Part shown: one piece after another, positions 35,161 to 64,000 of the stretch | Numbering within the stretch: the first letter of the stretch is position 1 | How the letters are laid out: every line of letters starts with the position of its first letter | DNA from: Ministeria vibrans ATCC 50519 | Lineage: Eukaryota; Protista; Filasterea | NCBI GenBank assembly: GCA_943704425.1 | Contig: CALSCP010002159.1 | Location: 87,815 to 151,814, forward strand | DNA length: 64,000 nucleotides | Reading direction: 5' to 3' | Program-made: the position numbers and the translations under genes | The notes under the pieces: model-generated | Told to the model about the DNA's origin: nothing | The model's database searches: none | The model's input: the letters and a program-made list of their open reading frames with translations, nothing else

Positions 35161-38100
35161 TCACAAAAATGACGAAGAGAGATCCTCTAACTCTGCGCCA
35201 AGCGATCGCACAAGTGAGCCCTTGTCAATCTCCGCCCTCATATACTGCACCAGACGGCAATGCAGCTCGGTGAAAGTGGGCCTCTGGCTTGCATCCTTGT
35301 GCCAGCAACTCAGCATCAGCTGATGGCAGGCGTCAGGACATTCCCGTGGTCGATCCAGTCGCTTCCCTTCACGTAGGGTTTGCGCCAAACTCTGAATCTC
35401 TAGAGACTTGTATGGGCGCACGGTGCCAAAGGTCATCACCTCCCACGCAACCACTCCAAAAGACCACACGTCCGTCTTGATCGAGAACTTGCGGAACTCC
35501 AACGACTCAAGAGCCATCCAACGTACAGGGAGTCTGCTTCGCGTCTTGACGCGGTAGTAGTCATCGTCATCCATCCGGCGTGACAGTCCAAAGTCAGCCA
35601 CCTTGATCACTGAGCCATGGCCAACGAGGCAATTACGAGCAGCCAACTGGCGAAGGAAAGGAAGAAAAAAGAGAGGGGCGAACTAAACTTAGAAAACAAA
35701 CATCATCACCATCACAAGGCTTCTTACATCGCGATGAACGAAAGAGAGAGACGAGATATACTCCATGCCTGAACTGATTTGCATCAACATATTCAACTGC
35801 TCAGCATAGCTCACGTTCAGAGCCGCGCAGGTGACACACAGGCGCAAAAAGTTGCGCAAATCACCGTGAGGACAATGCTATACGCAAATAAGAGGAATAA
35901 GAATAATAATAATAATAATAATTATAACAAAAGTCTTTTCTCATGGGGCTTGGTTTGGTGTGTACCTCAATAATGATGAGATAGGGATCATTGACAACGC
36001 ACACACCCACTAGTCCGAGAATGTTCTCATGATGAAAGGTAGCGAGAAGATGGGCTTCCGACAGGTAGTCTTCGCGCTCCCTTGCCTTCGCCCCATCTTT
36101 CAGCGTCTTCACAGCCACATACTTGGGATTCTTCCCATTCACATCAGTTGCACTTGCCTTGAGCACAACTCCAAATTCTCCTTTGCCGATTTCTTCGATA
36201 AAGGATAGTCGCGTGCGGTCAAAATGAAACGCGTCCACCTTGCTGGGGTCAAGTGGGAAGTTGTAAATGTTGCTTGAAACTGAGTCGGCGTTGTATATCG
36301 CGACCTCAGGAGGTAAGTCAACCCTCACGGTTTTGCGACTGGCTGTACCATACTTGGCAAACTCATCTTCATCCTCGAGAGCACCGTTGCTCTGTCTGAA
36401 AGGATTCATGGCGCGAGAATTCGGGCGCTGACCCCGCGCCGATATTTTGATTGTCTGGTAGATGTTCTCCAAGTCACCGGTGCGTACCTGTCTCTCGTAC
36501 AAGTCATAGTCGTCATAAGCTTCCCCAACGGTCTCATGGCAAACCTGTGGCGCCCGCAACGCGCCATACTCGGCACTAATTGGTCGACGATATTCCTCGA
36601 GATTCACATAGGCTGATTGCGACATGCTGTCAGAGAGAGGAACGTGATTAACATTCTCGTACTGCACAGAGGCTGTCGCGGTGGACGCTGCGACAGATTG
36701 ATAGATATCATCAAGCGCTGGTATGCTATCAGTCGCGTCGTACACGTGAGACCCGCTTGCCGAACCGCCAGGCTGGGACACCAACTCGTCCAATGATGGA
36801 GGCGCCGTACCAAGGGTACCATAAGCTGACGTCTCTTGTGGCCGAGAAACGTTTTTTGCGCTGAGTAGATTGTTGATGTCGTCACTTGAGATACCATACA
36901 AACGGCGAAGATCTTCAATATGCGCCTGCTGCTCTGGGATTTCGGTGAGTACTTCCGCAGAGTAAAAAAATGGCATGGCCTTCTGAGAGAGAGAGCCTTT
37001 CTGGGCCTCTCGCGACTTGTGAGACAGATTCCTTTCGTGAAATGTCACTTTATCTTGCGCGCTGTGTAAAAATGAGAGAACCGAAACTGGTCGTATTGGA
37101 TTAATATCGGCAGTGCGATTCATATCGGCAGTGCTAATCAGTTCGCTCTTGTGCGATTCGATCATCGGTATAGAGATTTGTGATATCGAAACTAAATCGT
37201 GACGAGTCCGCCCGAAACGCTTGCCACGACCACGACGTCGCCACAACACCACAATCACAATCATCAGGAGAATGCCCACGGCAACGGCAACAATTGCTCC
37301 AATGATGGGCAAGCTCGACGACGAGCCCGACGACTGACCACCCGTCCCACCACCTCCGCCGGGCTGATCCGGATCCAACGCTTCGCTGTCCGCCATCACC
37401 GCAAGCGCATAGGTACCCGTCTGTCGTGTCAGGCACGTTACACTCTCGCTGCTGCCAGCAAGGCGCTTCGAGCCTGTCGGTGTCCATGAACCACTCGTCG
37501 CACTCCAGCGCACACAACTGATTGTTTGGCCCCCGGACACACTGCTGACCGTCGTGTTGCTCGTGATGGGCAGTGTCAATTGAATGCCGTACTCATCCAT
37601 GTCGACAGGCACGCCCACTTGTGGGCTAGCAGTGGCACGCAGCGACACATCGTAGTAGTTGGACATAATGGTGCGTGTCGACGCGACCGCCTTGGGATTG
37701 CTCGTGAACACAAGCCAAATGGCGGTCAGGTCACAGCTCGAAGTGGTCGAGCAGCTCGTCACCGACGACACCGTCTCAATGAGTTCATCCGCGTCAAAGA
37801 GAGCACGCGTATTGCACGTGCCCGAGTGCGACAGGGCACACAAACCCGCATAGTCAACAACATTGTTAAAGGGCGACGTTGCATACGCAATGGCGCGTCG
37901 TCGGCCGGTCGCTGAGATCGCAGCAGGTGTCACCGTGCGCACACCCACAAGCAGTTGTGTCATGCCCGCATCCACTACCAGAGACTTCACGCCCGGTGAG
38001 AGAGTAGCGCCCACGCTGGCGCCCACATCAAGCATGCTCGCAATCACGGCACGTGAGGTCGTTGTCATTGTTTTCGACGATGACGACGAAGCACGCGCCA

Positions 38101-41100
38101 ACTGAAGACTCAGTGGTCGCATCAGTTGACCGGCCATGTCCGTGTCAAATGGCGACGCACCGCTCACCTGCCATGTGTCCGCATCCGTCAGACGCGCACG
38201 CGCCAGCTCAATGGCCTGGTACGAGGCATCAAAGGCCGAGTCTGAAATGCACGCAGACGTGTACTCGAGCGCCACGCCCACAAAGGCCGTGAGACGACGC
38301 GAGCTCATTTCGTTCGTACTGATCGACAGCGAGTCCAATATCGCCGTCGAGCCGCTCACCACAATCTTGTTGAGCAACTGCTGCGCGAGATCAACTACAC
38401 TGGTGTGTGCACACGCATCGCTCACCGTCGCGTCCCAGTAGGTGTTCACAGTGGCAAGCGCCGCCACGAATTCGCTCAGGGCCACTTGAACATTGCCCGA
38501 CGAGGCAAGTCGTGTGGTGGAGTTTGCAGCCGCCTCGCTCGCGTACGCTGCTACACTCGCCTCCGCTGCGGCAGCACTCACACCAGTCGACGCCACCATG
38601 TTGTCGGTGCGCACCGTCACGCTCGAGTCTGACACCGCTCGCGAGCCAAATCGATTGGTGATGCGCGCGCGTACCGTCACCGCCGTGCTCGACTGGTCGG
38701 TGGGGCTCGGCAACAGCGAGGTGATGGTCGAGTCCTGTGACTCGCCAGGCAGTGGAATCCACGCATTGCGTGCGCCCACAAATCCAAACGAGAATGAAAG
38801 GGGTGCATTGTCGGGCGAGTCGATCCAGCCGCTCGCCGTCAGCGTCGACTGCGAGAGCAGTGCAAAAACATCGCTGGTCGGCACGGTCACGGAGCCAGTC
38901 GACGGACTGTTGCGTGTCGGCAACGACGTCGACGTAGTCACCGAGCCAATTTTGTCGGTGACCGTGATGGCAATGAGATAGGTGACGCCCGGCGAGACCA
39001 CGTCCGCACGCAAACACAAAGTGGCCATGTCACGCGTGAATCCCGTGCAGTAAATGCTTGAGTCAGTCATGTCGAGTGCGGCAGCGCCCGAGCCCGAGTT
39101 GCTCCACTGTGTCAAAAGCGTAGCCGGAAACGACGACTCGATCTCGGTGTCGACAAACACACGTTTGCTCACGTCCACTTTGCCGTCGGCACCGAGACGC
39201 GGTACCACACTCACAATGGGCAGAGCAAAGGTGCTTGCTGACACAATGTGTGTCGCGCTGGCAGTGCGCGTATCGCGCGATACCTCCACCCGAAATCGAT
39301 AGGAGCGCGGCGAAAAAAGTGAGTCCGGTGGGAGACTCAAAATTGCTTCGTTGCGCACGGGAACGACCGAACTGAAGGAACCCGCCGTCGTGAATGTGTT
39401 GTCACAGTCGATGCAGGTCCAGGCAAAGGCGCAAGGCGCACCGCCCGTGCCGTCGTTGTCGACACACTGCGCCGTCAGAGTGAGCGCAAACTGCGCTCCA
39501 ATCGTAGTGGCGCCAATGATGGAGGCCAGCAGAGGCGTCTGCAACACCTCAAGCTGTTGCTGCGCCGATCCATACACCGTCGAGTCTGTGGCGAGCGTCG
39601 CCACTACAGAAAGTGTGTATGTGGCGGCACGAGCGAGCTCATTCGCACCGATGACAAGCACGGGTGCGGTCGCCGAGGCACCCAGCGGAATCGAGGGCTC
39701 AACAGACCACTGGTACAAAATGGATGAGGCATCGACAATGCCAGTGCAAGACGACGGCAGCACCACCGACACGGAGAAGGAGTTGACAACGGAACGTGAG
39801 ACAGCGGTGTTCGCCTGTGGAAATGTCACGCTTGGCACAACTCGACTTGTCACGTTCATGTGTGTCACCACAGGCAAGCTAGAAGTGCCCAAAAAGTTGG
39901 TCGCCACCAAAGAGATGGCGTAGCTTGTGTCGACCTGAAGCACCGACGCAATGGGTACAGCCGTGAGCGGTGTCAATGCGCTTTGTCCGTCTAGCAGCGT
40001 CTGCAGTGCACCACCATCGTCGGGCATCACACTGGTCACTTGCCACGCCAGTGTGACGGATCGTCCACCACTGCCGCTGTCCACAGCGTACGCCACCGTG
40101 GTGTTCGTATCGCAGGCGCTCACCGTGTCTGGCAGTCCAACAATTCGCACGACGGGCACCAGAGGTGGCACACTCGTGGCGCCGGCAGGCGTGTAGCCAT
40201 CGACAGTGACGGAGCCACTCGCGGCAAACGAATAGGGTGTGCTCGCAAGGAAGAGAACACTTGGGTTGCGTCTGAGCACGAGGGTATCGTCGGGCATCAG
40301 GGTGCTCGTAGTGCTCAACGTGATTTGCATGGTCGACAACGACGACCAGCGACACTTGGCGGTCGCGCCGAGTTGCGTCGCCGCGTCCACAAACACGGCC
40401 GCGCACAGCGCCACAGTCGAGAAAAGACCGCCTTGAACACGCACACCCACGTCGAAGACCACATCAACACGCAAGTAGTCGGGCGAAAACATGGCCGACG
40501 TGAGTGTGGGTGCGGATGCAAGCCAGACAAGTCCAAGTGACAGCGAGGGCGCCGTCACAATGGTGACCGACACTCCATTGAGCGTGAGCGAAAGCGGCCG
40601 TGCCTGAGCCACGCCAATGGCGTCCACTGTGCACTCGAGACGTGTCGACGAGACACGCACCGCCGACGATGACACGATGGCGAAGGCGCCGTCCGACGCG
40701 ACAAATTCACATGCCCAGACGCCAGTCGCGTCAAAGGTGCCATTCAGAACAATGACCACCGAAGTGCCAATGGATGTGACCAAAGGAGTCTGCGAATTGA
40801 CAAACACCGTCACAACGGGCGGTGTGCCGGGTGTCGAAGACGGAGAGGGCGCGACCGTGGGTGCAACGGAAGGACGCGGAACACACGAGGTGCGATCCGT
40901 GCCCAACTCGGTGGTCGGGTCGGGACAGGAGCACACAAAGCCAAAGGGTACATTGGTGCAGGTGCCTTCGCAGCCGGCGTTCGCACACAGGTTGGGCAAG
41001 GCACATGCACTGGCACCGTCCGATGCCAGACCCGATCCCTGATAGCCGGGTGAACACGAGCACAGCACATGACCGTCCGAGTTCGTACACACCTGCGCAC

Positions 41101-44100
41101 ATCCACCATTCGCCGTTTGACACTCGTCCACGTCAACACACACCACCGAACCGGTCCACAAGCCCGAGCTGGCGCAAGTCACGCCCGTGTCGCCAGGCGA
41201 CTGCAACACATAGCCATCGTCGCACGTGGCTGCACACACGTCTTGAAAGACGCCCGTCGAGCAGGCGTACGAGCCGTGGACAAGTGTGGGCACAGTGCCA
41301 CACGATTGACGAGCGCACGAGGCAACGGGAGCGGGCACCAGCAAACCGGTCGCGTCGCATGTGCTTGTCATCGTGGCCACATTGGTCGCGGCAAACACAT
41401 AGCCGCCGGTGCACGTCCAGGTGACCATCTCGCCAAAGGCAAGCGCGATGCCAATCTGCTGCGAGGACGAAGCACCCGTCACAAGCGGTGCGGCTCCGCA
41501 CGAAATAGGCAGACACAAATCACCCGTCGAAAAAGCACCCGTGTGCGAGCAGTTGCGGTCAATAAAGGTCGGGCCGCCCAGCGCGCCGGTCGTCGTGTAG
41601 CCTACGAGACACTCATACACAACCTCGCCCGTAAACGAGATTATATCGTCAGCCTTAGACGAAACGAGACGCGCGTTGCTCTGGAACGGTGGCACACCAC
41701 ATACAATTGCCTCACACAGCGGGACAAACGAGGCAAACGAGCCCGACGATTCGCACGCCACAGAAAAAGTTTTCAAGCCTGTTGACTTGATTTCGTAGCC
41801 CGTGTCACACTCATACTGCACCATGGTGGGATAGATGACGTTTGGGGCACCAGGTGCACTTACAATAGAGGCCAGACCGGCCACGGGAGGTATACCGCAG
41901 CGCACGGCGGTGCACGTCTGAACGCCCGTCAGCTGACCGTTGGTCTGACACGTCGCGTTGAACGTGGTGTGCGTTGCGGTGTAGCCCGCAGCGCACGTGT
42001 AGGTAGTGCGATCATTGAAGAGCAGAGGTGTCGTGCCGGTCGAGATGGCTGCATTGGAAACAACGGTGGCAGCTCCACACGAAATGGGGTTGCAGCTGGC
42101 CGAGGCCGGACCAAAAGTGCCGTCGGCATCGCATGTGCGGTTGAACAGAATGCCGCCGCCGAAAAGACCGCTTGTGGTGTGGTGCAACTCACAGTTGTAC
42201 TCGGCAATGGCCGGGTACGAGACGGGAATCGAAGGAGACAGAGCGGTCGCATGCGATTCGCTGGGTGGCAAACCACACGAGACCGGCACGCAGCCAACCG
42301 TGGAGGCCGACACGGTACCACCGGCGTTGCACGAGCGCGTAAACTCGGCGAGTTCGCCTGCCACACCGGTCGTGGTGTAGCCCGATTCACACGTGTACAC
42401 AACACTCTGACCAAACGAAAAGGTGCCTGAAAGGCTTGCGGTGGCATACTGTTCGGTGGTAATGGCCCCACAGGCTTGCGGCATGCACATGCCCGGGGTC
42501 GAAAAAGTGCCGGACAAGTCACAGTGCACGTCGAAGGAGCGATCGCCCGTCACGCTCGAGTCATTCGAATAGCCCGACAGACACGTGTACGTGACCGTCT
42601 GGCCGGCAGTTTGCACACGCGTGTCCTGTGCCTGCNNNNNNNNNNNNNNNNNNNNNNNNNNNNNNNNNNNNNNNNNNNNNNNNNNNNNNNNNNNNNNNNN
42701 NNNNNNNNNNNNNNNNNNNNNNNNNNNNNNNNNNNNNNNNNNNNNNNNNNNNNNNNNNNNNNNNNNNNNNNNNNNNNNNNNNNNNNNNNNNNNNNNNNNN
42801 NNNNNNNNNNNNNNNNNNNNNNNNNNNNNNNNNNNNNNNNNNNNNNNNNNNNNNNNNNNNNNNNNNNNNNNNNNNNNNNNNNNNNNNNNNNNNNNNNNNN
42901 NNNNNNNNNNNNNNNNNNNNNNNNNNNNNNNNNNNNNNNNNNNNNNNNNNNNNNNNNNNNNNNNNNNNNNNNNNNNNNNNNNNNNNNNNNNNNNNNNNNN
43001 NNNNNNNNNNNNNNNNNNNNNNNNNNNNNNNNNNNNNNNNNNNNNNNNNNNNNNNNNNNNNNNNNNNNNNNNNNNNNNNNNNNNNNNNNNNNNNNNNNNN
43101 NNNNNNNNNNNNNNNNNNNNNNNNNNNNNNNNNNNNNNNNNNNNNNNNNNNNNNNNNNNNNACGTGCAGCCTGAGCCAACCTGCGCACCGGTACAGATCG
43201 AGGTGGAGTCCGACACGGCGGGTACGGAGCCGGGGCATGACACAGTAATGCACGCTTGTACATTGAGAAACTGTCCGTTGGGGCCGCACGTGACGGTAAA
43301 GGAGGTGCGTTCGCTCGACACAAGCGACGGGGTTGGGAGACCGTCGGTGGTGTGACCGGCGGCACACGAGTAGATCGTTGAGTCATTGTAGAATTGAGGG
43401 GTGCCCGTACGACTGGATACTGCGCTCGATATGAGCGGAAGGGAACCACAGAAAATGCGAGTGCACACTTGCAACGGGGTGTACGTGCCGTCGGCCTGGC
43501 ATGTGATGGAAAAAGTGCTGGCACCGTCAACCGTGCCGGTGACAGTGAAGCCTGGGGCACACGTGTACGCCACGTTCTGGTTAAAGGTTACGGCCGTCGT
43601 GCTCCACGATGCGTCTGCAGCCTTTGGTGGCGCACCACACGACACGAGAAGACAAGTCGCCGAGGTGGTGGCAAGCATGCCGTTGGCCTGACACACGCGA
43701 GAGAATGTTCCATCGCCGTTGCCACCGACCAGGGCGTAGCCTGAACGACAAGTGAAGCCAACGAGAGTGCCAAACGACGCGGTACTCGCCCTCATGAGGG
43801 AAGCCACCGACGTCGTGTCGGCAGGCACGGCGCACTGTACCGGCATGCACTCACTGGCGCCCACGTCAAAGGTACCGTCGGTCTGGCAGTTGACAAGAAG
43901 GGGCACCGCATCACCCACAATGCCCGAGATGGTATAGCCTACATTGCAGGTGTAGGTCGCCGTTTGTGGGTACACCAGCAAACTGCTACTCGCTCCGGTG
44001 CTCACGGTGGTGAGGTTAGCGTTGAGCACGACAGGCGCACTCCCACAGACAATGGGCCGACAAAAGGCGCCCGCGTTGGACCAGGATTGGTCACTCTGGC

Positions 44101-47100
44101 ACTCGCGCGTGTACTCCACGTCCGTGCTGCCGCCCACGACAAAACCAGGGTAGCAAGTGTAAGTGACCGTTTCGCCAAACACTTTGGTGGTGAGCGAACT
44201 TTCGGAGGCGGCAGGATCATTTGGCGTCAAACCGCACGCCTGAGGTGCACAAGTCAGGGCCGAATTCGACCAAGCCCACGAACCAGTTGAGCACGTCGCC
44301 GTCGCCGGAGACACCCCAAGTAAGGAGACGAAGCCGGCAGCACAAGTGTACACACAGCTGTCACTCGAGGCGGTTGCGGTGCACGCCACGTCGGCGTTGG
44401 CCACAACAAAGCCGTTGGGACAGGACGTGCGAATGCACGCGAGGCCCGTGTTGTTCCACGCGCCCGACGACTGACACACACGACGAGTGTCCGCTGTGGT
44501 CGCTTCAAAGCCGGATTCACAGGCGTAGGTACAGGTGTCGCCTTGTTCGAGCGAGGCTGGCGTGCACTCTGGCGCGGCAGCATTGCCAATGGTGGGTACA
44601 GCGTCGCAGACTCGCACGTTGCAACCAACAACGTTGCTGTACACACCCGTGTTGGTGCAGAGTACAGCAAAGGTAGTGACGAACGAGCCGAGGGTGTAAC
44701 CGGCGTCACATGTATACACCACGGACTCGCCGGCGTTGCGGGGTGTTGTGCTTGCGGCTGCCGTGGCATGGGCAGCAAGGGGTGGCACATTGCATGAGAT
44801 GATCCGGCACGAGCTGGTCGCCGAGAAGGTACCCGAGGCAAGACAAGTGATGCTAAAAGTGGTCGCACCCGAGGCGGTACCGGTGAGCGAGTAGCCCGAA
44901 TCACACGTGAACACGGTTTGTTCGCCAAAGAACGAGGCTACACCCGGTCTCGTTGCGTGCGTCAAGCTGGGAGGAAAGCCACAGGAGATATCAATGCACT
45001 GAGCGGTACTTGTCGAAAACGAACCGTCGACGAGACATGTGAGAGAGTAAGAGGAATGATTGCCAGCGATTCCCGTCACAGTGTATCCCGAGTTGCACGA
45101 CACGACGGCAGTGTCGCCGACAAGGTAGGGTCCGGCCAAGACCGACGAGGAAGCAGCGTGCACGGTGGGCGCGGCGCATGTGATGGCTTCGCACACGGGT
45201 GCTCCGGCAAAGGTACCGTTGGCATAGCAGTCCAGAGTGAACTGCGTAACGCCACCCGACACTCCCAGAATGGATGTGCCGGACGCACAGATGTACGTGG
45301 CACCCGCACCAAATGTGATGGCACCGTTGGAGACGGGCGAGGCGCTCTCAATGTTCGGCGGTACACCGCAGCTGACGGGCAGACAGGCGGTGGCATCGTT
45401 GGACAGCCGTCCGGACGACTCACAGACGCGCACAAAAGAGGCAGCGCCATTTGCAAGGCCAGTCGTTGTGTAGCCAGTGCGACACTCAATGGTGGCAGTG
45501 TCACCAAAGAAAAGTGTTGTGGGTGCTTGCGTCACCGTATTGAGTGTTGTTGGAAGTGTTCCACAGCTGATCGCGGTGCAGCTGAGTGCAAAGTTGTTGG
45601 TCCATAACCACGACTCGCTCAGACACGTACGCGTAGCCGGTGAGGAAGCACCACCGGACACAGCCTCGTACCCGACCTGACACGTGTAGGTGCACGATTC
45701 ACCATGAGCCAGCGGTCCCGTGAGCGGCGAGGTACAGACACGCGTGGAAAAAGCAACGACCGACGGAGACGAGGCGCACAGTGTGGCGACGCAGGCAAGA
45801 TCGACGTTGTCCCACACGCCCGACGAGGTACACACGCGCTTGTTGCTTGCCGAGGGTGGATCTTGCTTGAAGCCTGTGTGGCACAAGTAGGTGCACGCAT
45901 CACTGACAGCGGTGCCCTGGGTGCACGAGCGTGCCGAGTTGGAAATGGTGGGTGCAATACCACAGGAAATGGTTCCACACACGCGCGTGCCCGCGTACGC
46001 GCCCGTCTGGTCGCAGGTGACCGAAAAAGTGGTGGCGCTACCTGGCTGACCGTCAACGGTGGCGCCCCCATCGCAAGTGTAGAGGACGGTCTGGGAGAAG
46101 CGAAGCGACGCAGTCGAAGCGGGCGTGGAACCGGAGATGACAGGCAAGGTACCGCAGCTGATGGGCAGGCACGAGAGAACATCGGTGAAGGTGCCCAAGG
46201 CACTACAACCAATATTGAAGGACGACTGTCCTGACGTCTCACCTGTAACAGTGTAGCCTGTATTACAGTCAATACGATGCTGCACGCCAAAGAGAAGCTC
46301 GTCGGAGCTCGAGGTCGAAAAGACAATGGAAGGAGGTGTGCCACACGACACTTTCTGGCATGCATAGGAGAGGTCAAGCTGGCCGGTGGCAAGGCACGCC
46401 GCAGAGAAGGTATTGTTGGTTGACAAGCTCACGGGAGCCCCGTCGGTTGAGTAGCCCTCGTCACAGCTGTAGGTAATGGAACCCCCGACAATGGTGGTGA
46501 TGGCGGAGGCACTCGCATGTTGGACGACGCTAGCGCTGCACTCGATAGCAAGACAGAACAGGCCGAGGTTGTCAAACGAACCGGAGGCAAGGCACAAACG
46601 AGTGAATTCCGTGTTTACTGTCGTGGCAGGTGCACGATCCGTGCTGTAGCCCGTGTCGCACACGTATGTGACAGCACCACCAAAGGAGACGGTGTTTGTT
46701 GACGAGAGAGAAGCATGTGCGATAGGCTGCGGTACGCCACAGGTGACCGGCAAGCACTCTGCGTTGGCGGGTGTCGCGGCCGAGTAGAGGCCTGTGTCGA
46801 GGCAGGTGCGCTCGTAGAAACTTGAAGCGGGCAGAATGCCACCGACGGTGGCGCCTGTCTTGCACAACAATCGGACCGTATCACCAAAGTTGACCGATAC
46901 AGTGGGACCGCTTGTCCACGTATCCTGTGCTGGTGGGGGGCACTTGATACGCACACACACAGTTTGAGCATTGTCGTAGGTGGCCGACTCGAGACAGGCG
47001 CGGGTGAAGGTGAAAATGCCACCGGCGGCCGCGGACAAACCGTTTGTGGAGTAGCCGGTGTTGCAGGTGTAGCTGGCTGCGTGTGCGTTTGAGGTGGGGT

Positions 47101-48178
47101 CAGCGTTGTACTGGCTAGCCGTCGACGTGATGGTCGCATCACTCACACTTGGTGGAGTGGGACATGTGACGAGGGAGCAGCCGGGAGCAAATGAAGTGCC
47201 GTCAAAAGTCGCAGCGGTGGTACAGGTGCGTGTGAATGTCTTTTGAGCACTCGAGCCGACCGGTGAGCCGTCAAGCGAGTATCCTGTACGACAGGTGTAG
47301 ACGGCGGGAAATGGAGGCAAGTAATACCGAATGGAGGAGGGCTGGGACACGTAAGCATTAGCCATGGTGGGAGGTATGTCGCAGCTGATGACGTTGCAGG
47401 AGAGCACGTTGGTGAAGAGGCCCGTGCTGGAGCACTGAGCGACAAAGTTTTCGTTGGCCGATGTGAGCGCACCAGCGTTGGTGGTAAAGCCAGTTTCACA
47501 ACGGTAGCTCGGCTGGAAAGAAACTGAACTAATTATATCAGACGCGCCTACGGTGCCCAGAATTGCGTTTTGAATGGCGGGAGCCCTGCCGCAAGTGATG
47601 GGCACGCATGAGCCAGGAGTAGACCACAACCCCGTGACCAGACACGTGATCGTAAACTGCGTGGTGCTGTTGAACGCGATGCCCTTGCCTGTCGTGCTGT
47701 AGTTGTCGCTGCACGTGTAGATGGCGACATCCTCGTAGACACCCGTGGTAAGACTGCGAGACGCCTGCGAGATGACTGGCGTTGGGCCACACGAGAGACG
47801 CGTCTTGCAGTTTGTCGACGGGGTGTTATAGCCCGAGCGACAAACTTTGGCGCCCGAGATTGGATTGCAGGTGTAGTGACCCTGAGCGTCCGAGTCTTGG
47901 GCGATGCACTGAAAGGTGCAGCCGCTAAAGGGATCGTTGGTGGGGTACCAGTCGGCGGCGCACACACGATAGCCATTGCTTGTGTCACACGTGTACGCGT
48001 TGTTGCTGGGCGCGAGGCAGTAGCGACACTGGCTGCCGTAGGCGTTGGGGTAGCAGTCAGCGGCAAGGTAGACGGTGGCCTTTCGTATCCCATCAACATT
48101 GCCTCGGTCGATGGTCGATATGAGCCAATTGGGGTCGTTGGCATTGACCTGCGCCGAGGAGTACACTCTAAAGATAAT

Positions 48179-48210
<32 letters not shown>

Positions 48211-48926
48211 TGAAACAGTGACAGCGAGAGAGAGAGTTTCTTACGTTCCCATATTGTCATGACCTGTCAAAAAATCTTCGTCCCAACAGGCAACATAATA
48301 GAAAACGGAACCAGAATATACTCCTGAGAGCGATTTGGACGCTAAAACACTCCCAAACGACCATCTACAAATTTGAAGAGTGAAAAATAAACCATTTACC
48401 CCAAGAGGAGCAAGGAGGTTTTGACATTCAAACAGGCACGCATTGACGGCCTCCATTTCAGCAATTAGCTACAGGGAATAGGAGCGGATGGCGGGGAGCG
48501 GGCGGAGGGGTATGGGGGTTTTGGAGAGGTTCTCGCTTATTTTCTCCTTTTGATTATTATTTCTTTGCCGTCCGCTGAGCTCTTCTGCCATATAGGCCAT
48601 GGCAGAAGGGCAACACTTGATAAGAAAATGTGCTTGCCAATGGGTAATGTGAGGCAAGAGGTTTACGGAAAGGGAGAACTCACGGATATATACGTATTAA
48701 CTTACGTAGCAGTGTTCATGTCCGACATGGTGGAACTATTCGATGAAACCTCGTAATTTGATGTTGACGACGACACGGCGATAATGCATTGCGTGTCACA
48801 GTCTTCGGCAAACGTTCCGTGGTAGCACTTGCCAGTGACGCTCGTGAGAGTAGCTCGCAACTGGTAAGTGTTCTGAGATTCACAAAGCATCAAACAGCCG
48901 AGACTGAAAAAGAGTTGCAGCCACAT
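35161..48926 (-). CDS. Giant receptor tyrosine kinase (~4,400 aa): signal peptide, C2-like, tandem DSL-like, ~30-35 Sushi/CCP, EGF-Ca, IPT-like, REJ/PKD, degenerate GAIN/GPS, TM, Tyr-rich juxtamembrane, TK; 5 exons
   Basis: Exons 48926-48704, 48364-48245, 48167-35965 (includes N gap), ~35877-35728, 35646-35161. Signal MWLQLFFSLGCLMLCES. TM LPIIGAIVAVAVGILLMIVIVVLW-RRR. Kinase IGKGEFG, VAVKTLK, VHRD|LAARNCLV, DFGLSR, DYYR, LPVRWMALES, DVWSFGV all intact. Confidence 0.92.
42636..43161. other. Assembly gap (526 N) inside the Sushi array of the RTK
   Basis: Run of N with Sushi-type sequence on both sides. Confidence 0.99.
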
Positions 48927-49469
48927 GATGCTTTTTAACTTAACTGAAAACGCAATCGCAAGAGTGGGCATGCCTCACTCCTGTGCGCGATAGTAAAAAG
49001 TGAGATTAAGATTGTTAAATCCCGAGTTCATCCCGAGTTCATCGAGCACACCAATCCTTACCGATCTAAGGGTGTCAATTACTGTACTCAAGTATTGAGT
49101 GTGTGCTCAGTATGGCACTGTACTCGGGGAGGTCCAGGTTACCAGTATGGAATACTCGCAAAATCAATCTGAGCCGAGAAATACTGAAGTAAAAGCCTTG
49201 CCCATCAGGGGTATGCGGCTTCCAACCACTAATTATATCCTCTTCTACAGCAGCGCCTTGAGGTACGCATGCAACAAACTGTATGTCGCACACCGACACC
49301 CTCGAAACAATCCAAATATTGGGTGTGCCCTGACGGTGGTGGAGCTTGCTCCCTCCTCCCAGTGCCAGCACAAGGGTGCTGGCAGAGCCTTATGTCCCTC
49401 CCAGGATATGGTGCATTTGGTGTCTATCGCGTCACTTGTCTGGCTATTAGTCAATCTGTCTCGAGATCT

Positions 49470-49805
<336 letters not shown>

Positions 49806-49882
49806 CATTTATTTTGCAGAGGAATAATAAGCATACTTTTATATTGGTATTCATAAACCTGTCACTCGCATGCATGAATATA

Positions 49883-56172: not shown

Positions 56173-59100
56173 CTACATCGTGTTCTCGGGAAGCAGAACA
56201 CGATTCAAGGACAACGTACCCAACGCCATATTACTATCCCCTCCAGACGCATCCAAGTCTTGCCCCACCGTCATCTCCTGCACCGTCTCCATTGCGTGCG
56301 CCATCGTGAATCCTTCTTCCGCCAGCCCCACAATTTGAGTGTCCCGTCGGTCACTCAGTGCCCCCAGACTCGCCTCCATCGACACAAGCACCGACAATTC
56401 TTGCTCCTCCTCTGCTTCCGACACAGAATTCGTCTTGGCCGATACACCACTTTTTGTTGCACGCTTCTTGTCCTTCCCCCCACTCTGAGTGATCGACGCG
56501 CTGCTCGTGTGCTCCGTCGACCTGGAACTGTTCTTCTTCCCATGCCCCGCACCGCTCGACGATACCAATTGCAGGCCAGGCAGTGCCTTCGCCACACGCT
56601 CCTTCCATTCCTTGCGCTGTCGTGCGTTCATCGCAAAGAAAACTGCCACAAGAATCGCTATAAAAACAAAAAAAAGCAAAAAAAAAGTGTATTAATAATA
56701 ATTATTATTATTATTTAATTTTATCTTATACTATGGGATGTCACACAATACCTTGCGAGCACACTGCAATAACAAAGAGATACCAAAAGGCAACCTGACG
56801 CGACACAACGGCAATATATGCAAAAAGCCATGAAATACCCAACGCAGACTGTAAAGAAAAAAGATGTCAAGACCGAACATGTCTTTAAGAAAGGATCGCG
56901 TACCGACATGCCAAGGTAGACACGGAGAAGCGCCGACGCCGATTTTCGTCGCGAATTCTTTTCCTGCTGTTGCTTTCGAAGCTGACGCACCAACAAAACA
57001 AACACGACCAAATTGTGCACAACAATGAGCGCAGTCGGTACAAGAAATGCGCCAATCAGCGAGGAAGAATAGGCAAACCAACAGTTGTCGGTGCCTGAGC
57101 CAAGCCCAATCAGTCGCGAGTGCGTTGCCTGGTCCACCACCACCACCACTACGCATACAATGCCAGTATTAATAATATTACTAATTATTATCACTCACGC
57201 AGTGAGTTCATACAAACAGTGAGCAGCAGCGGGACAAGCCATCCACAGACGACAAAGGTGCGGGTGCGAGGAGGCGAGCCAAACACCGTCACAAGGAGAA
57301 AGCGCAGATTGTGCGCCACACACGCCATCCACATAAACGACGCCAGCAAGAAAAAGTACAACAGGGCACCAACAATCTACAAAAAAACACACATTCCATT
57401 CATGTTAAAATTCTTCCAATGTATGCTATATTTTTTAAAGTGCTCTTCTTCTTCTTCTTCAACAATAATTATTAATATTATTTACCTGGCAGCCAACTGT
57501 ATTGGCCGTCTTCTCAATGCCAATCAAGAAAATCAGGTAACTGCAAAAAAGCGCCACTGACAAGTGCACAAGCAACAAAAGCGGCTGCGTGTGCATCCCT
57601 TTGAGTGCAAAATACGACACGGTTACATAGAGTGCGCCGAGAAGCGACAACACACATCCCACGTAAGTGAGTGCACTGAGCGCCGTCGCATGACCTGGTG
57701 TCAGACTTGCATCCTCATTGACAAGCGATGCTCCCGCAAGCACCGCAAAATTGGTGAGATGATTGCAGGCACAAACAGTGTGCGTTTCGTCTGACGAGCG
57801 TCGTTCACAACCGGCACCCGACCAGAGTTGCTCATCCTCGCGCCAGAATACACACTCCTTGACCGTGTCGCTCGTGCGCGTCGCAAACGTCAAAAGGACC
57901 TCAGACGTGTTTGAGAGAGCATTCACCGAGACATTGGCAAATGCCAACTGCACAGTCTGGCTCAGTTGAGTCTGGTTACCAAGCACCGAATAAAATGGTA
58001 CAGGGTCCCCGCTGTACACAAAAAAACGCGCCGTAAGACACTCGGAGGACGGTACAGCACCGAGAGCCTCACTCGCAAAGTCGGCTCCCAGCGACACGGT
58101 CGACAGGGCATCAACAGACGTAAAGTTGCGCAGAGCCAACGCACTCGCATCCGACTGTCGATCAATTTCCACGAGTAAGCGACTCTTCTCACGACGAGAG
58201 ATACTCTCGCATGGAAGCGTCGCCTCCACCAAGTCACCATACAACTCCGTCAGCGGAATGAGCGCATTTTGAAAGCCTGCCGACGAGAGTGCCCCCAACG
58301 ATGCATTCAGCATAAGCGAGTCAAGCACGCTGAACACACCATCGACAATGTAGGCAGTCGTGTTGAGCTGATTGGTCGCGTTGCGACCATACAATGAAAA
58401 TTCACCAAGTGCCGTTTGAACAACAGCCTCGGTCGAATTCACCATAATCTGCGATGCCACCGAGCCGTCGTAAAAGCCGCTCCAACTGCTCGAGTTACTC
58501 AGGCCCAACAGCAAACTCGTCGCCTCGGCGGCAGCAACACTTCCGTTGATCGGCAGCAGCAGCAGGGACAAAAGAGAGCAGGGCACCGAAGAGGGCCTCG
58601 CTTCGCCCACCACAGCAAAGTTGGGCAACGGCTGACTGAGGTCCAGGTATGCACCCACACACAAATTAGGATTGCGAATGAACGACATGTTGCCTACAAT
58701 GCGTGTCTCGTGCTCCCGTAGCACGATCGCAAGAGCGCTCAACTCGAATATATCTTCGCACTCCTCAATGAGACAATTGCCCTGGAACATTGACAGTACA
58801 CCCGTGCCTTCGGCCAGCCGCACGTCCGACACGCGATCGCACTCCGCAATCGTCAGGTCACCAGCAAACGTCTCAATCGTGCTGCCCAATGAAAATTCAG
58901 TCAGCACGGAGCAGTTGCGCACTTGGACGTTGCCCTGAAAAACACTCCCGCTGACAGGTGGTAGTACAAGAGACTCGAGCGCGTCGTTTTGCTCCACAAA
59001 AAGCCCACGATCGATCTGACGCAATAGTGGAAACACATCAACCGCATGCAATTGTTCAAGCGCCGAATTGTTGCTGACAACGACGGAACCTGACACAACA

Positions 59101-62100
59101 GTGAGTTGAGCAAACCCCGTGACAGTGTGCAGCAGTGGATTATTCGCAATGGTGAGCGTGCCAAGCGCGGCAATTGCATTGAGCGGGCATGCAACAGAGA
59201 GAAGACTGTCGTTGTCCACAATCGAAATGTTAGCATTGGCATTCATCACCAATGTCGCACCAAGCACATCATCTGTGAGCATCGCCAATTTCGCATTTCG
59301 TTCAATCACAATGCGAGATACCACCAACTCAACACTGCCAAACCCATCAAGGGAAGTCAGCTCAAAGTTGTCCGTGATCCACATCTCATCCAGACGAGCG
59401 CCCGTCATCTGTACACACCAAAAACCAGAATAATCATGAGAAGATAGTAATATAAAACAATACACAACAAAGAAAGGAACAAAATAACAAACACAGACAC
59501 ATGTGCAAAACCAACGGCTTACTTTCAAGAAAGACACGTCTGTCAATGCCGTCGCCACAATCAAAACACCGCTTTGTATACCGGTCGCGTTGACCATCGT
59601 ACCCACTGTGTCGATCGCTGTTAGGTTCAACAAGCTGCTAAATCGCAAGCTGTCCGCAGACTGCAGCAAAGAAAAAAGAGGCGTTGTCACATTGGTGAGC
59701 GACGGGAGTTTGTCAAAGACGATGGCGCCTTCAACAAATTCCACCGCCGCGAATGCAGACATCACAATCTCGCGCAGTTGCTGGTTGTCTTGAATCGATA
59801 GCGCGCCGTACACACGCTCGAGATGCGACAGAGTATCGATTGATTGAATAGACGTGCCTTCGACTGTGAGCGATCCATTGATGGTGCGCAGAAGCGAAAG
59901 GGAGTTCAGGTTGATCACTGCCGCCCCACTGAAGGTCACGTAACCTTCAATAACAACACAACCAGCAAAAGTGTCCACGCGCGCCTGCGTTGTCACCACC
60001 TCATTTCCGCGACAGTCACTTTCGCAATGTAGCCCAAACACGTTGGGCACACACATGCAAGTATAACCACCAATCAAATCGGTGCAGCTTCCACCGTGGC
60101 GACAGGGAGCACTCGCACACTCGTTAATCTCAATCTGACACTGTGTGCCAGTGTACGCAGGCAAACACTGGCAAGAGAAAAAGCCTTGTTGATTGGCACA
60201 CACACCATTATGAAGACATGGCGACGAGTCGCATTCGTTCACGTCCACGTCACAGAGTACACCAGTGAATCCCTGCATACAAAGACATGTAAAGTTGAGT
60301 GCCTCAACGACACATGACTGAGTCCCCAGTGTGGAACATGGGCTGGACGAACAAAAGTCAAACGTAGCCTGACACCGGTCACCCACACGGCCGTTTTCAC
60401 AGGAACCTGGAGAATAAAAAACAAAAAAAAACACAAGACAAACAAAAAAAAGAGCCAGCTCGGTAAATCAACTTGACGCACCACAACTTTTCCCCGGATC
60501 TTACAATTAAAATTATTCCCAGGTAAAGGAGTACACTGGCCAGAAAACATGCACGGCGATGAAGCACACGCGTCCACACTCGACTCGCACAGGTGGCCAG
60601 TGAAGCCTGCTGAGCAAGTACAAGTGATGCTGTTGGTCAACGCATCGTTGGCACAGACACCCTGATTTTGGCACGGCGACGAATCACACTCGTTGACGTC
60701 TTGCTGGCAAATCTTGCCCGAATATCCACTTGTGCAGACACAAGAAAAGTCATCAATGAGATCAGTGCAATTTCCTGAATGAAGGCAGGGTGACGAGGCA
60801 CACTCGTTGATGTTCGTTCCGCAAGTGGCATCGGTGAAGCCGCTGGCGCACACACATTCAAACGCATCGACAAGATCCACACAAGTACCACCATTAGAGC
60901 AAGGCAAACTAGAGCATTCAGTGGTGGGAGTGTCGCAAAGGGCGCCGGTGTAGCCAGGCAGGCAGGTACAAGTGTTGGGAGCGGAACAGGCACCAAAGAC
61001 ACAAGTCGACGAGCAAGATGGAACGTTGCACAATGGAGGCGAGAGGAAGCCAGTTGGACATTGACAAAGACCATCCGCGTCACAAGTGCCACCGCTGCAG
61101 GTTTCGCTGCAAAAGAGTACCGGTGAGTAGGTACACGACGATCCATCGACGCCAGCCTGGTATCCAGTGCCACCAGTTACATCAATTTGACTTGTCAACA
61201 ACGACGAGTACACTGTGTGTAAGCACACTCGGCCGCCGCCGCCGCCACCTCCTTGCCGAGTAGCCGAAGGCGATGAACCTCCAGTCGCACTAATAGAGCC
61301 TGTCCCGCGGATTGATTGTGCAGTTAACAGCACACTGCCACCCGATCCACCACCTGTCGACAGAGTGATACTGCAGCAAGTGCCCCCGCGATTCACACCG
61401 CCACCTCCGTCAACCACAATGGTACCGTTCATGATAATCGCACTTGAACTAATCACTTCAATTGCGCCACCGCCTGCTCCACCATAGGTGCTCATCACAG
61501 AGCCACCAGGTGACCCACACGTGCGAGGCCAAGTGGCATTTCCGTATGGCGCGCCGCCACTCAATGAAGTCCATCCATCTCCACCGCTGCCACCATGACC
61601 ACCACCTCCTCCACCTTCATTACCAGACGTACTGCCACCGGTTGCCATACCCAGCTCAGCCTGAGAGGACCGCACACCAACTCCAATCAGCTGTCCACTT
61701 GATTCCACTATAAGGCCCGTTGGCGCCGAGATGGATACATTGGCAAAGGCAAACATGCCGGCAATAGACATGTTCTGTTGCAGCACGACCGTCATACGTT
61801 CATAGCTCGCAAAGTCAAAATTAAGCGTTGATGAGGTCTCGACAGTAAGCGAACCCGACGAGAGCGTGACACGTGCGTGAGAACCAACGGACGCAAAAGA
61901 ACCGACATTCATGACGCTGCCGGACAGAAGCTCGATGGCAGTGAAATCTCCACGAAACACCCCTTGCACAGTAAGCGTGACATCCGCAGGAACAGTGAGC
62001 GACGAACCAAAAACCAAAGAGGCGTTTAGGGACACGTCCAAATCAAACGGCACTACCGTGCACGTAACACACACGAAGACACCGTTCACGGTGACAAGCG

Positions 62101-64000
62101 CAGATGCGTCACCGTCAAGGGAAGAACTGGACACAGAAATGTCGCTCGCGATATCAACCACTGCAGCAGCGCCAACAGAAATCGAATCCAAGTCGATTCC
62201 ACCCGAATGACCAAGCGATTCAGAAGTGATCATAGTCTGCGGCCCAAGCACTCCACCATTGGCAATGATAAGGGACGCAACACCCCCAAATGACGTGTAC
62301 ACGGTGCCGGCAGCGCCAATCTCATTGCCGCCGCCCCCAACGGCCGTCAGTGTCAACGATGCGCTCGTCGCCAACTGCGAATGCACTGCGATCCGACCCC
62401 CAGAACCACCCTAAAAACACCAGGGGAAAAAAACAGCAAGAGAGAGTTCGAGAGAGAGAGAGGGGGAGAAAACGATAAAGTCAGTACAAACACATATTGC
62501 CATTGCCAAAATTGTTCGCCGTACCCCTCCCGGTCGATTGGTGCTCGATGTGGTCGCACTTCCGCCACTTGCCGTCACCGATCCTGAGCCCACGACCTGT
62601 CGAGCAATCATCACAACTGACCCGCCCGATCCACCACCCAGCGATGAAAAGATCCCACAACAAGTCCCTCCGACGTATCTAAAACAAATCGGCAAACAAT
62701 CGAAACACAGCAACGTATTAACACAGATGTTGCGTTGTCGCATTACTACTTACACGCCAGTGCCACCGTTCATAGTCACTGTGCCGTTGTGCGTCAGTGT
62801 CCCCGCACTTTCGATCCACCACGCCCCGCCACCGGCGCCGGCTGCCACTCCGTTGTAGTTTGTACCACCGCCAGAGCCAGGTATTGCTGCGCGCAACAGA
62901 AACAAGTATAATGATTACATTAAATCACGAATCCAGACGCACGTCAACACACGCTGTCACACACGCACCAAAATAAAATCAATACCTGGATGTTCAATGT
63001 CGCCAAACTGAACGCCACCCGACGTTCCAGCTAGTCCAGTTCCGCCCGATCCCGCGTGTCCACCCCCTCCCGATCCCGTGTGAATTGTCGTTGCGTCCGC
63101 TCCGCCTGGTCCACTCGACGATCCATATCCACGACCCTACAATCAACGGCGGAGCACGTCAGAAAAAATATCACATCACAAACGAAACAAGGCATGTCTT
63201 ACGTCGCCCGTGACTGTCGTCTCCTCCCCAATCAGCACATCGCCACCCACGTTCATACGCGCATTCGTCACCACCACCGTCGTGCTCGCACTTGGCGACG
63301 ACAGCCCCGTGCCCAGTGTCACGTGCCCAGTCACATTCAACTGCATCATCGCCGCGTACGATGGCTCCTCGCTGAGTGTCATGCTTGCTCCGTCGTCCAG
63401 CCACAACGACCCGCCGACAGTCACATCCGTCTGCTGCACTGTCAGCAATCCTCCGCTCGCAACCGACACAGAGCCGCTCAGATCAAACACGCGCCCTCGA
63501 TTGGCAGTCGCCCGGAGCGTCACAGCCGACATCGAATCCACAATCGTCACACTGCCGTCCAAACCGTCAACTTGCGCGCCGTCCACCACGTCGAGCGAGC
63601 CACCGTTCGACACGACGATGTCTCGTGCCCATTCCAGCTCCCCGCGCACCTCCAATGCGTACGACAATTCCTGTTCTCCCATCACTCCCGCAGCACACGC
63701 AAGACGTCCGTCCACTCGAAGCTGCGCCGAAACACTCCCGCTCGTCGTCGTCGCTTCAATTGTCCGGTTGGCCGGAATACGCGCCACTGCGCCCCGTTCC
63801 ATCCGTAGCTCGGTCAGCACCAGTGTCGTTGTGGTGGTTGGGATCAGGTTGACGCCAATTGCGGTGGATGGGCTCGTCAGAGCTGAGTCCAGACGCAGCG
63901 TTGACACGCCGCCAAACGACGTGTAAATGGTGCCGGCAGCGCCAATCTCATTGCCGCCGCCCCCAACGGCCGTCAGTGTCAACGATGCGCTCGTCGCCAA
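56173..64000 (-). CDS. Adhesion GPCR, 5' end beyond right edge: Gly-rich/beta-helix repeats, 9 EGF (7 Notch-type), receptor-L-like domains, GAIN/GPS, secretin-type 7TM
   Basis: GPS CVFWREDEQLWSGAGC...TVCACNHLTNFAVL with intact HL/T. TM1 LTYVGCVLSLLG, TM3 LLYFFLLASFMWM, TM4 GWLVPLLL, ECL2 NCW. EGF-Ca motifs NINECASSPC and DVNECDSSPC. L-domain-like GCVVIEGYVTF...LSLLRTINGSLTV. Gly-rich GGGGGGHGGSGG..YG..P..GSPGG..GGAGGGAI..GGGSGGSV. Confidence 0.9.

Follow-up and report, generated by a model that had tools for sequence, protein, structure and literature searches.

The window analysed here is a stretch of 64,000 nucleotides from the filasterean Ministeria vibrans ATCC 50519 (assembly GCA_943704425.1, contig CALSCP010002159.1, positions 87,815 to 151,814), and its minus strand carries the gene with which we are concerned. 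With a gap in the assembly filled, the coding sequence of this gene totals 13,179 nt and the protein about 4,390 amino acids (aa), in which a head, about 34 Sushi repeats, EGF, REJ, a transmembrane (TM) helix and an intact tyrosine kinase follow each other in this order. It is marked as a receptor tyrosine kinase (RTK) by a signal peptide, a single TM helix and the kinase motifs GxGxxG, VAVK, HRDLAARN, DFG and P.RWMA.E. An earlier note on this DNA had compared the head with the tip of the Notch ligands, which starts with a C2 (MNNL) domain and a DSL domain. The explanation that we favour, and consider quite probable, is that the gene of this unicellular holozoan, whose genome is small, encodes a type-I RTK of about 4,390 aa, that the tip of this protein shares ancestry with the head by which Notch ligands bind their receptor, and that it represents a filasterean 'Delta-like' kind of RTK. 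The protein is not a Delta/Jagged ligand.

The head is encoded by the first two exons and the beginning of a third (Table 1). Apart from a run of N, exon 3 is a single open frame of 12.2 kb ending at 35966. All introns of the gene are of the GT-AG type and the reading frame is kept, with AC|A at both junctions that join exons 1, 2 and 3. The joining of these exons, as proposed in the earlier note, was found in spliced contigs of two RNA-type runs, which use the same junctions; record 13 of one of them (X3) runs continuously over 47909-48167, 48245-48364 and 48706-48818. Contigs of a DNA-type run (X7) are colinear with the genome and retain the introns. In addition, two short contigs from a poly-A marine metatranscriptome (X5), which are 95-99% alike, cover the DSL region. 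The spliced transcript is present in RNA runs of 2025 that come from a single study. The modelled splicing of the three head exons is thus borne out, and the region is transcribed. The peptides quoted in the earlier note likewise lie on the minus strand where they had been placed, and the last DSL-like Cys ends exactly at 47807.

The remainder of the protein also agrees with what had been read from the DNA. Over exons 3 to 5, the order of the Pfam matches is a Sushi array, EGF_CA, REJ and PK_Tyr. The array directly follows the DSL region, as expected from the long Sushi stalk that had been described, and the first Sushi repeat starts 5 residues past the last DSL Cys. In the window copy, an iterated hidden Markov model (HMM) counted 24 repeats on the head side of the gap and 8 on the kinase side; a gap-free paralog has 34. 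The kinase had been regarded as catalytically intact, and all of its motifs were indeed located in exons 3 to 5 (GKGEFG, VAVK, HRD|LAARN, which is split by an intron, DFG, DYY and PVRWMALE). The cytoplasmic part of exon 3, which counts 449 aa from the first TM residue and includes the N-lobe of the kinase, contains 19 Tyr.

Continuity of the gene across the assembly gap

The presence of a run of 526 N within exon 3 raises the question whether a scaffolding error has fused the head of one gene to the kinase of another. The proteins of the paralogs are 97-100% identical around the gap, which speaks for such a misjoin, as does the fact that no RNA contig was seen to cross it. A further point that weighs against our reading is that, over 300 nt immediately beyond the gap towards the tail, no more than 2 nt distinguish the two copies, which leaves a small probability of a phase switch between paralogs in the assembly. 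Against a misjoin stands the short contig C697 (747 nt, no N), which is 100% identical to the two flanks of the gap, over 111 nt and 110 nt; the 526 nt in between fit the gap to the base. This interval holds an open, Sushi-coding frame that is in frame with the gene, and it is 95% identical to the paralog on contig C313, with 37 differing positions. C697 would appear to be the other branch of an assembly bubble formed by the two paralogs. The C313 paralog is itself free of gaps; its colinearity with the window gene extends from exon 1 until shortly after the TM helix, at a nucleotide identity of 88-93%, and the unaligned interval amounts to 529 nt in both.

The DNA flanking the gap was also searched for in the whole assembly (29.7 Mb in 2860 contigs), where it occurs in only two copies, each with a head of the C2-DSL type. 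One such head is therefore joined to the kinase tail under either phasing. Moreover, an independent gene on contig C1426 links the same head to a sister kinase. With the gap closed in frame by C697 and the gap-free paralog being colinear, the head and the kinase are parts of one protein, and we consider a misjoin at the gap very improbable.

Table 1. Features of the receptor gene, with positions counted from the first letter of the window
Feature	Position	Strand	Remarks
Exon 1	48706..48926	-	ATG at 48926; hydrophobic signal-like peptide of ~18 aa; first part of the C2/MNNL-like domain (Cys pair, 'CD..C.I.V' motif)
Intron 1	48365..48705	-	341 nt, GT..AG; joint 48364->48706 in contigs of RNA-type runs X1 and X3
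Exon 2	48245..48364	-	Middle of the C2/MNNL-like domain; acidic 'WDEDF..GHD' loop
Intron 2	48168..48244	-	77 nt, GT..AG, mostly CT/CA microsatellite; X3 record 13 unbroken over 48167|48245
Exon 3 start	48056..48167	-	Last strands of the C2/MNNL-like domain, 37 aa
DSL unit 1	47918..48055	-	Six Cys: C38, C47, C50, C60, C69 and C83 of exon 3
DSL unit 2	47807..47962	-	C69..C120; C69-C83 loop common with unit 1; GHYTC motif
Sushi/CCP stalk	41153..47791	-	Pfam Sushi 1.9e-74 and 7.6e-25; repeats counted with the iterated HMM
N run	42636..43161		526 N inside exon 3
EGF, calcium-binding type	41015..41134	-	Followed by a second EGF-like unit; Pfam EGF_CA 7e-5 and FXa_inhibition 1.6e-6, both under curated cut-offs
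REJ domain region	38474..39733	-	Pfam REJ 2.7e-24 on the second piece; 1.7e-31 in the paralog
Transmembrane helix	37241..37312	-	Followed by RRRGRGKR stop-transfer stretch; predicted from sequence
Juxtamembrane region	36206..37240	-	~345 aa, many Tyr
Kinase N-lobe, end of exon 3	35966..36205	-	GKGEFG Gly loop, VAVK lysine; Pfam PK_Tyr_Ser-Thr positions 2-81, 1.2e-15
Exon 4	35728..35877	-	Kinase hinge to HRD; placed by GT-AG sites and frame; PK_Tyr positions 96-130
Exon 5	35161..35646	-	LAARN, DFG, DYY activation loop, PVRWMALE, C-lobe, stop; PK_Tyr positions 128-258, 1.1e-49

Long (CT)n/(GA)n microsatellites lie upstream of the gene at 49460-49810, where a run of 6 N is located at 49677-49682, and the CT/CA repeat of intron 2 occupies 48180-48240. 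The adjacent gene, at 57459-62386 on the minus strand, is of the adhesion-type G protein-coupled receptor kind; its two long frames match EGF, EGF_CA, Receptor-L, GPS and 7tm_2.

Identity of the Cys-rich stretch and of the domain before it

The first 120 aa of exon 3 were used as the DSL query in an index-free HMMER search (phmmer) against 1.8 billion representatives. This returned 125 matches at E<=1e-3, of which 27 had E<=1e-10, with a top E of 7.6e-33. It should be noted that the top scores add up several repeats per target, and that single-stretch matches reach 5e-10. When 124 of the matches were scanned, Pfam DSL was present in 122 and MNNL in 9 as well, and neither HRDLAARN nor DFG kinase motifs were found in any of them. 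The best matches are cnidarian (a Nematostella 'delta-like protein D', a relative misnamed 'draper', Actinostola, Exaiptasia, Sanderia and Clytia). The members of another group show MNNL, a single DSL and EGF in the canonical order, and in some of them MNNL is found by Pfam; these sequences, which are environmental or unnamed, are 52-59% identical to unit 2 over 39 aa and have the ending 'GY..PSTNC' in common with it. Consistent with these results, hhalign aligned the exon-3 profile, built from the head's three copies in the genome, with an MNNL-DSL reference at a probability of 98.3%.

The Cys pattern and the predicted structure lead in the same direction. Six Cys are present per unit, spaced by x8, x2, x9, x8 and x13 in unit 1 and, from C83 to C120, by x3, x12, x8 and x10 in unit 2; the reference spacing, that of Jagged-1, is about C-x8-C-x3-C-x11-C-x7-C-x8-C. 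The GHY.C motif, which is conserved ahead of the fourth Cys, is present as GHYTC in unit 2, and unit 1 retains A-Y-T-C only. In the AlphaFold (AF2) model of the 120 aa, the mean pLDDT is 75, with values of 71-95 for residues 31-120, of 87-95 in DSL unit 2, and block averages of 38-54 over residues 1-30; the start of exon 3 contributes two beta-strands at low pLDDT. A Foldseek search with this model gave Notch-ligand chains (Serrate, DLL4, Jagged-1, Jagged-2 and DLL1) at all of the top 27 ranks except rank 6, a SCARF1 chain. The probabilities of the Notch-ligand matches were 0.84-1.0, with sub-alignments of 49-53 residues at an rmsd of 1.4-2.5 A, whereas those of generic EGF chains (Notch EGF, Pfs25, netrin) did not exceed 0.15. 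VIA-align, which is independent of Foldseek, ranked the Jagged-1 DSL first (2vj2_A, residues 187-232, matched to unit 1), with a Z of 4.0 and an rmsd of 2.5 A over 43 residues at 30% identity.

The DSL units are arranged in tandem, and the C5-C6 loop of unit 1 serves as the C1-C2 loop of unit 2, as is the case in the multi-DSL arrays of cnidarians. The '1.7 overlapping DSL units' of the earlier note correspond to these two tandem units with a shared Cys loop. Altogether, the DSL neighbours, the profile alignment and the Foldseek ranks uphold the DSL reading as such.

Several observations speak against this assignment, and the most direct of these came from Pfam. Even at E<=10, no DSL, MNNL, C2, EGF or laminin-EGF match was reported on the single exons, where solely one sub-threshold Sushi match and two chance matches appeared; the comparison with Pfam DSL that the earlier note had suggested was therefore silent for the window copy. 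The heads of the C313 and C1426 genes score 21.4 and 21.2 bits with Pfam DSL, below the cut-off of 24.2. Furthermore, phmmer of the head against the sequences of the PDB retrieved no DLL or JAG, but only spurious matches to Nup120 (E 0.045), and the best structural Z of 4.0 is low, as is expected for a disulfide knot of 45 aa. Searches for homologs with a word index found no relatives of the head in the classes of 220-700 or 917-2919 aa, blanks that reflect the index and the length window rather than absence, and for the cytoplasmic piece such a search gave a generic Ros-like kinase only. The stretch is not a formal member of Pfam DSL (PF01414); its homology to DSL domains is nonetheless well supported.

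The domain of about 130 aa that precedes the DSL units was tested exon by exon, with Pfam, a custom HMM and hhalign each being applied to single exons. The custom HMM was built from the MNNL part of 13 phmmer matches. Among 1761 six-frame fragments of the window it placed exon 1 at rank 1 and exon 2 at rank 4, and when both paralog loci were added the exon-1 copies took ranks 1, 2 and 4 of 2446 fragments. All three exon-1 copies align on one region of the profile, with the motif 'CCD...CD.yf.icv'. With hhalign, exon 1 (as a profile of the three paralogs) was aligned to positions 8-86 of the MNNL-DSL reference at a probability of 69%, and upon removal of the signal peptide to positions 45-86 at 47%, with a score of 27.3 as compared to 11.0+-2.3 for shuffles. 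Exon 2 was aligned to positions 108-131, the acidic WD.D..D loop, at 58% (27.1 versus 10.5+-2.2 for shuffles), and exon 3 to positions 140-214, starting from its residue 8. For each exon, the observed score was reached by none of 150 column shuffles (27-32 versus 11+-2, z about 7-9). Exons 1, 2 and 3 map in order and colinearly onto the MNNL-DSL template. The domain is located between the signal peptide and the DSL, and displays the motifs CC..C.C..F.ICL and WD.D..DD.ID in that order, the motif in exon 2 fitting the V.[AS]WD.D....DD.[IV]D loop of cnidarian MNNL domains. Lastly, four cnidarian MNNL-DSL proteins align with the phmmer query without a break from the end of MNNL into DSL, starting at query residues 6-9.

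Two other explanations of the head have to be weighed against the homology with Notch ligands. According to one, the Cys-rich stretch would be a generic EGF or laminin-EGF-like knot with a convergent likeness to DSL. The sub-threshold Pfam DSL scores and the low structural Z-scores that are usual for small disulfide-rich domains would be compatible with this, but 122 of the 124 neighbours contain DSL although EGF proteins are far commoner in the library. Neither Pfam EGF nor laminin-EGF matches the stretch, Foldseek clearly separates Notch-ligand chains from EGF-containing ones, and unit 2 shares more than half of its residues with the DSL of MNNL-DSL-EGF proteins. The stretch is consequently not described better as EGF or laminin EGF, and convergence appears exceedingly improbable. 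The other explanation accepts the two DSL units and holds that they are preceded by an unrelated, beta-rich and Cys-containing domain with an acidic loop that arose by chance. This view gains from the observations that Pfam MNNL (PF07657, cut-off 22.5 bits) did not match any single exon, and that the custom HMM scored the single exons at 4.5-8.7 bits with hhalign probabilities in the range of 47-69%, which is weak in absolute terms; all of this counts against our assignment. A six-frame Pfam MNNL search of the whole genome gave no match either, which belongs on the same side, although the controls were silent too and the result is hence uninformative. It is more difficult to reconcile an unrelated domain with three exons that fall in order on consecutive parts of the MNNL profile so far above shuffles, with the canonical position between signal peptide and DSL, with the continuity of the four cnidarian proteins from the MNNL C-terminus into DSL, and with the like behaviour of three paralogs. 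We therefore regard this alternative as rather unlikely, and the domain of about 130 aa after the signal peptide as probably homologous to MNNL/C2. The C2/MNNL assignment of the earlier note thus receives support from the ordered alignment of the exons but none from Pfam.

Relatives of the head in the Ministeria vibrans genome

The C2-DSL-type head occurs three times in the genome, namely in the window gene, on C313 and on C1426. The gene at C313:113276-125866 is a kinase-less twin of the window gene, which has a three-exon head of 82% aa identity, 34 Sushi repeats, EGF, REJ and a TM helix. The likeness ends right after the TM helix, where an unrelated, Tyr-containing tail of about 400 aa without kinase follows. 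This paralog is probably transcribed too. At 47857-47863 of the window, one contig of RNA-type run X1 carries six changes to the C313 codons (P-I-S to S-A-T).

A kinase that lies 28 kb downstream on C313 was considered as the missing part of the twin and rejected, because its exon also encodes an ectodomain and a TM helix, which makes it part of another receptor gene, and because a plus-strand open reading frame separates the two genes. This separate RTK, at C313:84535-89826, has an ectodomain composed of a Cys-rich part, EGF, a Val/Ala/Thr-rich repeat and Sushi, whereas in the juxtamembrane region and the kinase it is closely paralogous to the window gene. This suggests that one cytoplasmic module has been combined with shuffled ectodomains.

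In the third gene, at C1426:1-9394, the same head is again encoded by three exons, the intron phases match those of the window gene, and a Sushi-like unit follows. The stalk of this gene consists of at least 30 EGF repeats with a plastocyanin/azurin-like insert (Copper-bind, cupredoxin-like), after which come a TM helix and a kinase closely similar to that of the window gene. This architecture, two DSL with EGF repeats and a kinase, is the one reported for Capsaspora.

Above its cut-off, Pfam DSL matched C2494:19909-20043 (30.6 bits) and C2427:35387-35521 (28 bits), which lie inside open frames of 7,098 and 14,922 aa, respectively, and two tandem sub-threshold matches were found on C2457. Because of these matches, DSL appears to be present in several giant surface proteins of this genome. 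The Notch LNR domain (PF00066) was detected at at least four loci (C2097, C2583, C386 and C985) with up to 52 bits, three of these domains being in tandem on C2097.

Possible function, origin and comparison with known systems

We propose that the head, which would be held far out on a long stalk, contacts a surface-bound partner. The C2-like domain might bind a lipid of a membrane, or the partner could be a protein of the EGF/LNR type that is exposed by prey or by another cell. Binding would then bring receptors together in clusters and thereby activate the kinase by trans-phosphorylation, and the near-identical kinase-less paralog with its Tyr-rich tail might act as a co-receptor or substrate.

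It is also conceivable that the protein acts as a true Notch ligand, the head of which trans-activates LNR-bearing Notch-like receptors of its own species while the kinase serves reverse signalling. In favour of this are the homology between the head and the Notch-binding module, the LNR genes found in this genome, and a report that genes with Notch-type domains and a putative RBPJ are upregulated in M. vibrans aggregation (2026 paper, PMC13366479). However, Sushi repeats take the place of the EGF1-2 units that come after DSL in the ligands, which makes a Notch-ligand function less likely. In addition, the basic and aromatic residues by which the Jagged-1 DSL contacts Notch do not appear to be kept, only GHYxC and one Asp being conserved; this also weighs to some extent against the homology that we propose. 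Altogether, we judge a genuine Notch-ligand role to be improbable, and an RTK with a head homologous to that of Notch ligands remains the explanation that we prefer.

At stake here is the origin of the ligands of Notch signalling, a hallmark of animal development. In the published placement, DSL is found in Capsaspora (within a receptor kinase) and in ichthyosporeans, and the combination of MNNL and DSL dates back only to choanoflagellates. If the N-terminal domain is a true MNNL/C2, the complete C2-DSL head would predate the split between filastereans on the one hand and choanoflagellates plus animals on the other, and would have been wired to phosphotyrosine signalling in the filasterean lineage. 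One may go further and suppose that the ancestor shared by animals, choanoflagellates and filastereans already possessed the C2(MNNL)-DSL head, at first as the tip with which an RTK senses, and that Delta/Jagged arose by loss of the kinase. We consider this scenario doubtful; if it were correct, the C313 paralog, with the same head, stalk and TM helix and an unrelated tail in place of the kinase, would be a living example of the step. The family of three genes, comprising a kinase with a Sushi/REJ stalk, a kinase with an EGF stalk and a kinase-less twin, represents a testable system for how a receptor might change into a ligand by domain swapping. Since standard Pfam annotation misses these heads, surveys of protists for 'Notch components' may undercount them.

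The literature contains precedents for parts of the architecture. The earlier note did not know this architecture from animals; the combination of DSL and kinase is, however, not without precedent: a review (PMC4810162, citing Suga 2013) describes a Capsaspora 'Delta-like' RTK with two DSL domains and EGF repeats, and it assumes that MNNL was added later, on the animal stem. The Capsaspora genome paper mentions receptor proteins that resemble Notch and Delta in architecture (PMC3753549). MNNL together with DSL has been reported for one choanoflagellate, Salpingoeca dolichothecata, and DSL for two ichthyosporeans (Richter et al. 2018, PMC6040629). In a 2024 paper, another kinase of M. vibrans was linked with DLL, JAG and NOTCH solely by its EGF repeats (PMC11594159). 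In our search of the literature, we found no description of MNNL with DSL on a kinase, or of a version with a Sushi/REJ stalk. What is new with respect to the known filasterean kind is therefore the likely C2/MNNL domain, which, on the strength of the profile alignments, would place a complete Notch-ligand head on a kinase.

By the description in the review, the Capsaspora 'Delta-like' RTK resembles the product of the window gene in that it spans the membrane once, has two DSL outside the cell and carries a tyrosine kinase in its cytoplasmic part. It differs by its tandem EGF repeats, where the window gene has about 34 Sushi repeats plus REJ and only two EGF-like units, and no MNNL is described for it there, whereas the window gene has an MNNL-like domain. 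The S. dolichothecata protein also combines MNNL and DSL in a non-animal holozoan (PMC6040629), but it is known from a partial transcript for which neither kinase nor TM helix is reported, and Pfam detects both domains there and neither of them here.

Among animal proteins, the closest are the cnidarian multi-DSL Delta-like proteins (Nematostella XP_032232844 and XP_032232843), which gave the best matches at about 40% identity and in which MNNL is directly followed by head-to-tail DSL units with a shared Cys loop. Unlike the window gene, they have 4 to 14 DSL and no Sushi/REJ stalk or kinase. Two gene models of Oscarella lobularis (XP_065845465 and XP_065845464; 165-170 aa) contain the C-terminus of MNNL, DSL and a remnant of tyrosine-kinase subdomain IX, WSFGVVLWEIFTLG. 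These models may represent a trace of an animal DSL-kinase gene, or an artefact of prediction. Delta, Serrate and Jagged (4cc0, 4xlw, 4xbm, 7alt and 2vj2) have in common with the window gene the N-terminal C2(MNNL)-DSL order, the type-I membrane topology and the DSL fold. However, these ligands have one DSL, EGF repeats and a short tail without enzyme, whereas the window gene has two DSL, Sushi repeats instead of EGF1-2 and a complete PK_Tyr. Finally, the lower parts of the ectodomain recall other receptors: a REJ close to the membrane is known from the Polycystin-1/REJ family, and a long Sushi stalk that presents a distal binding domain from CCP-stalk receptors such as selectins and CR1/CR2. 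None of these receptors carries a DSL head or a tyrosine kinase, both of which are joined in the window gene.

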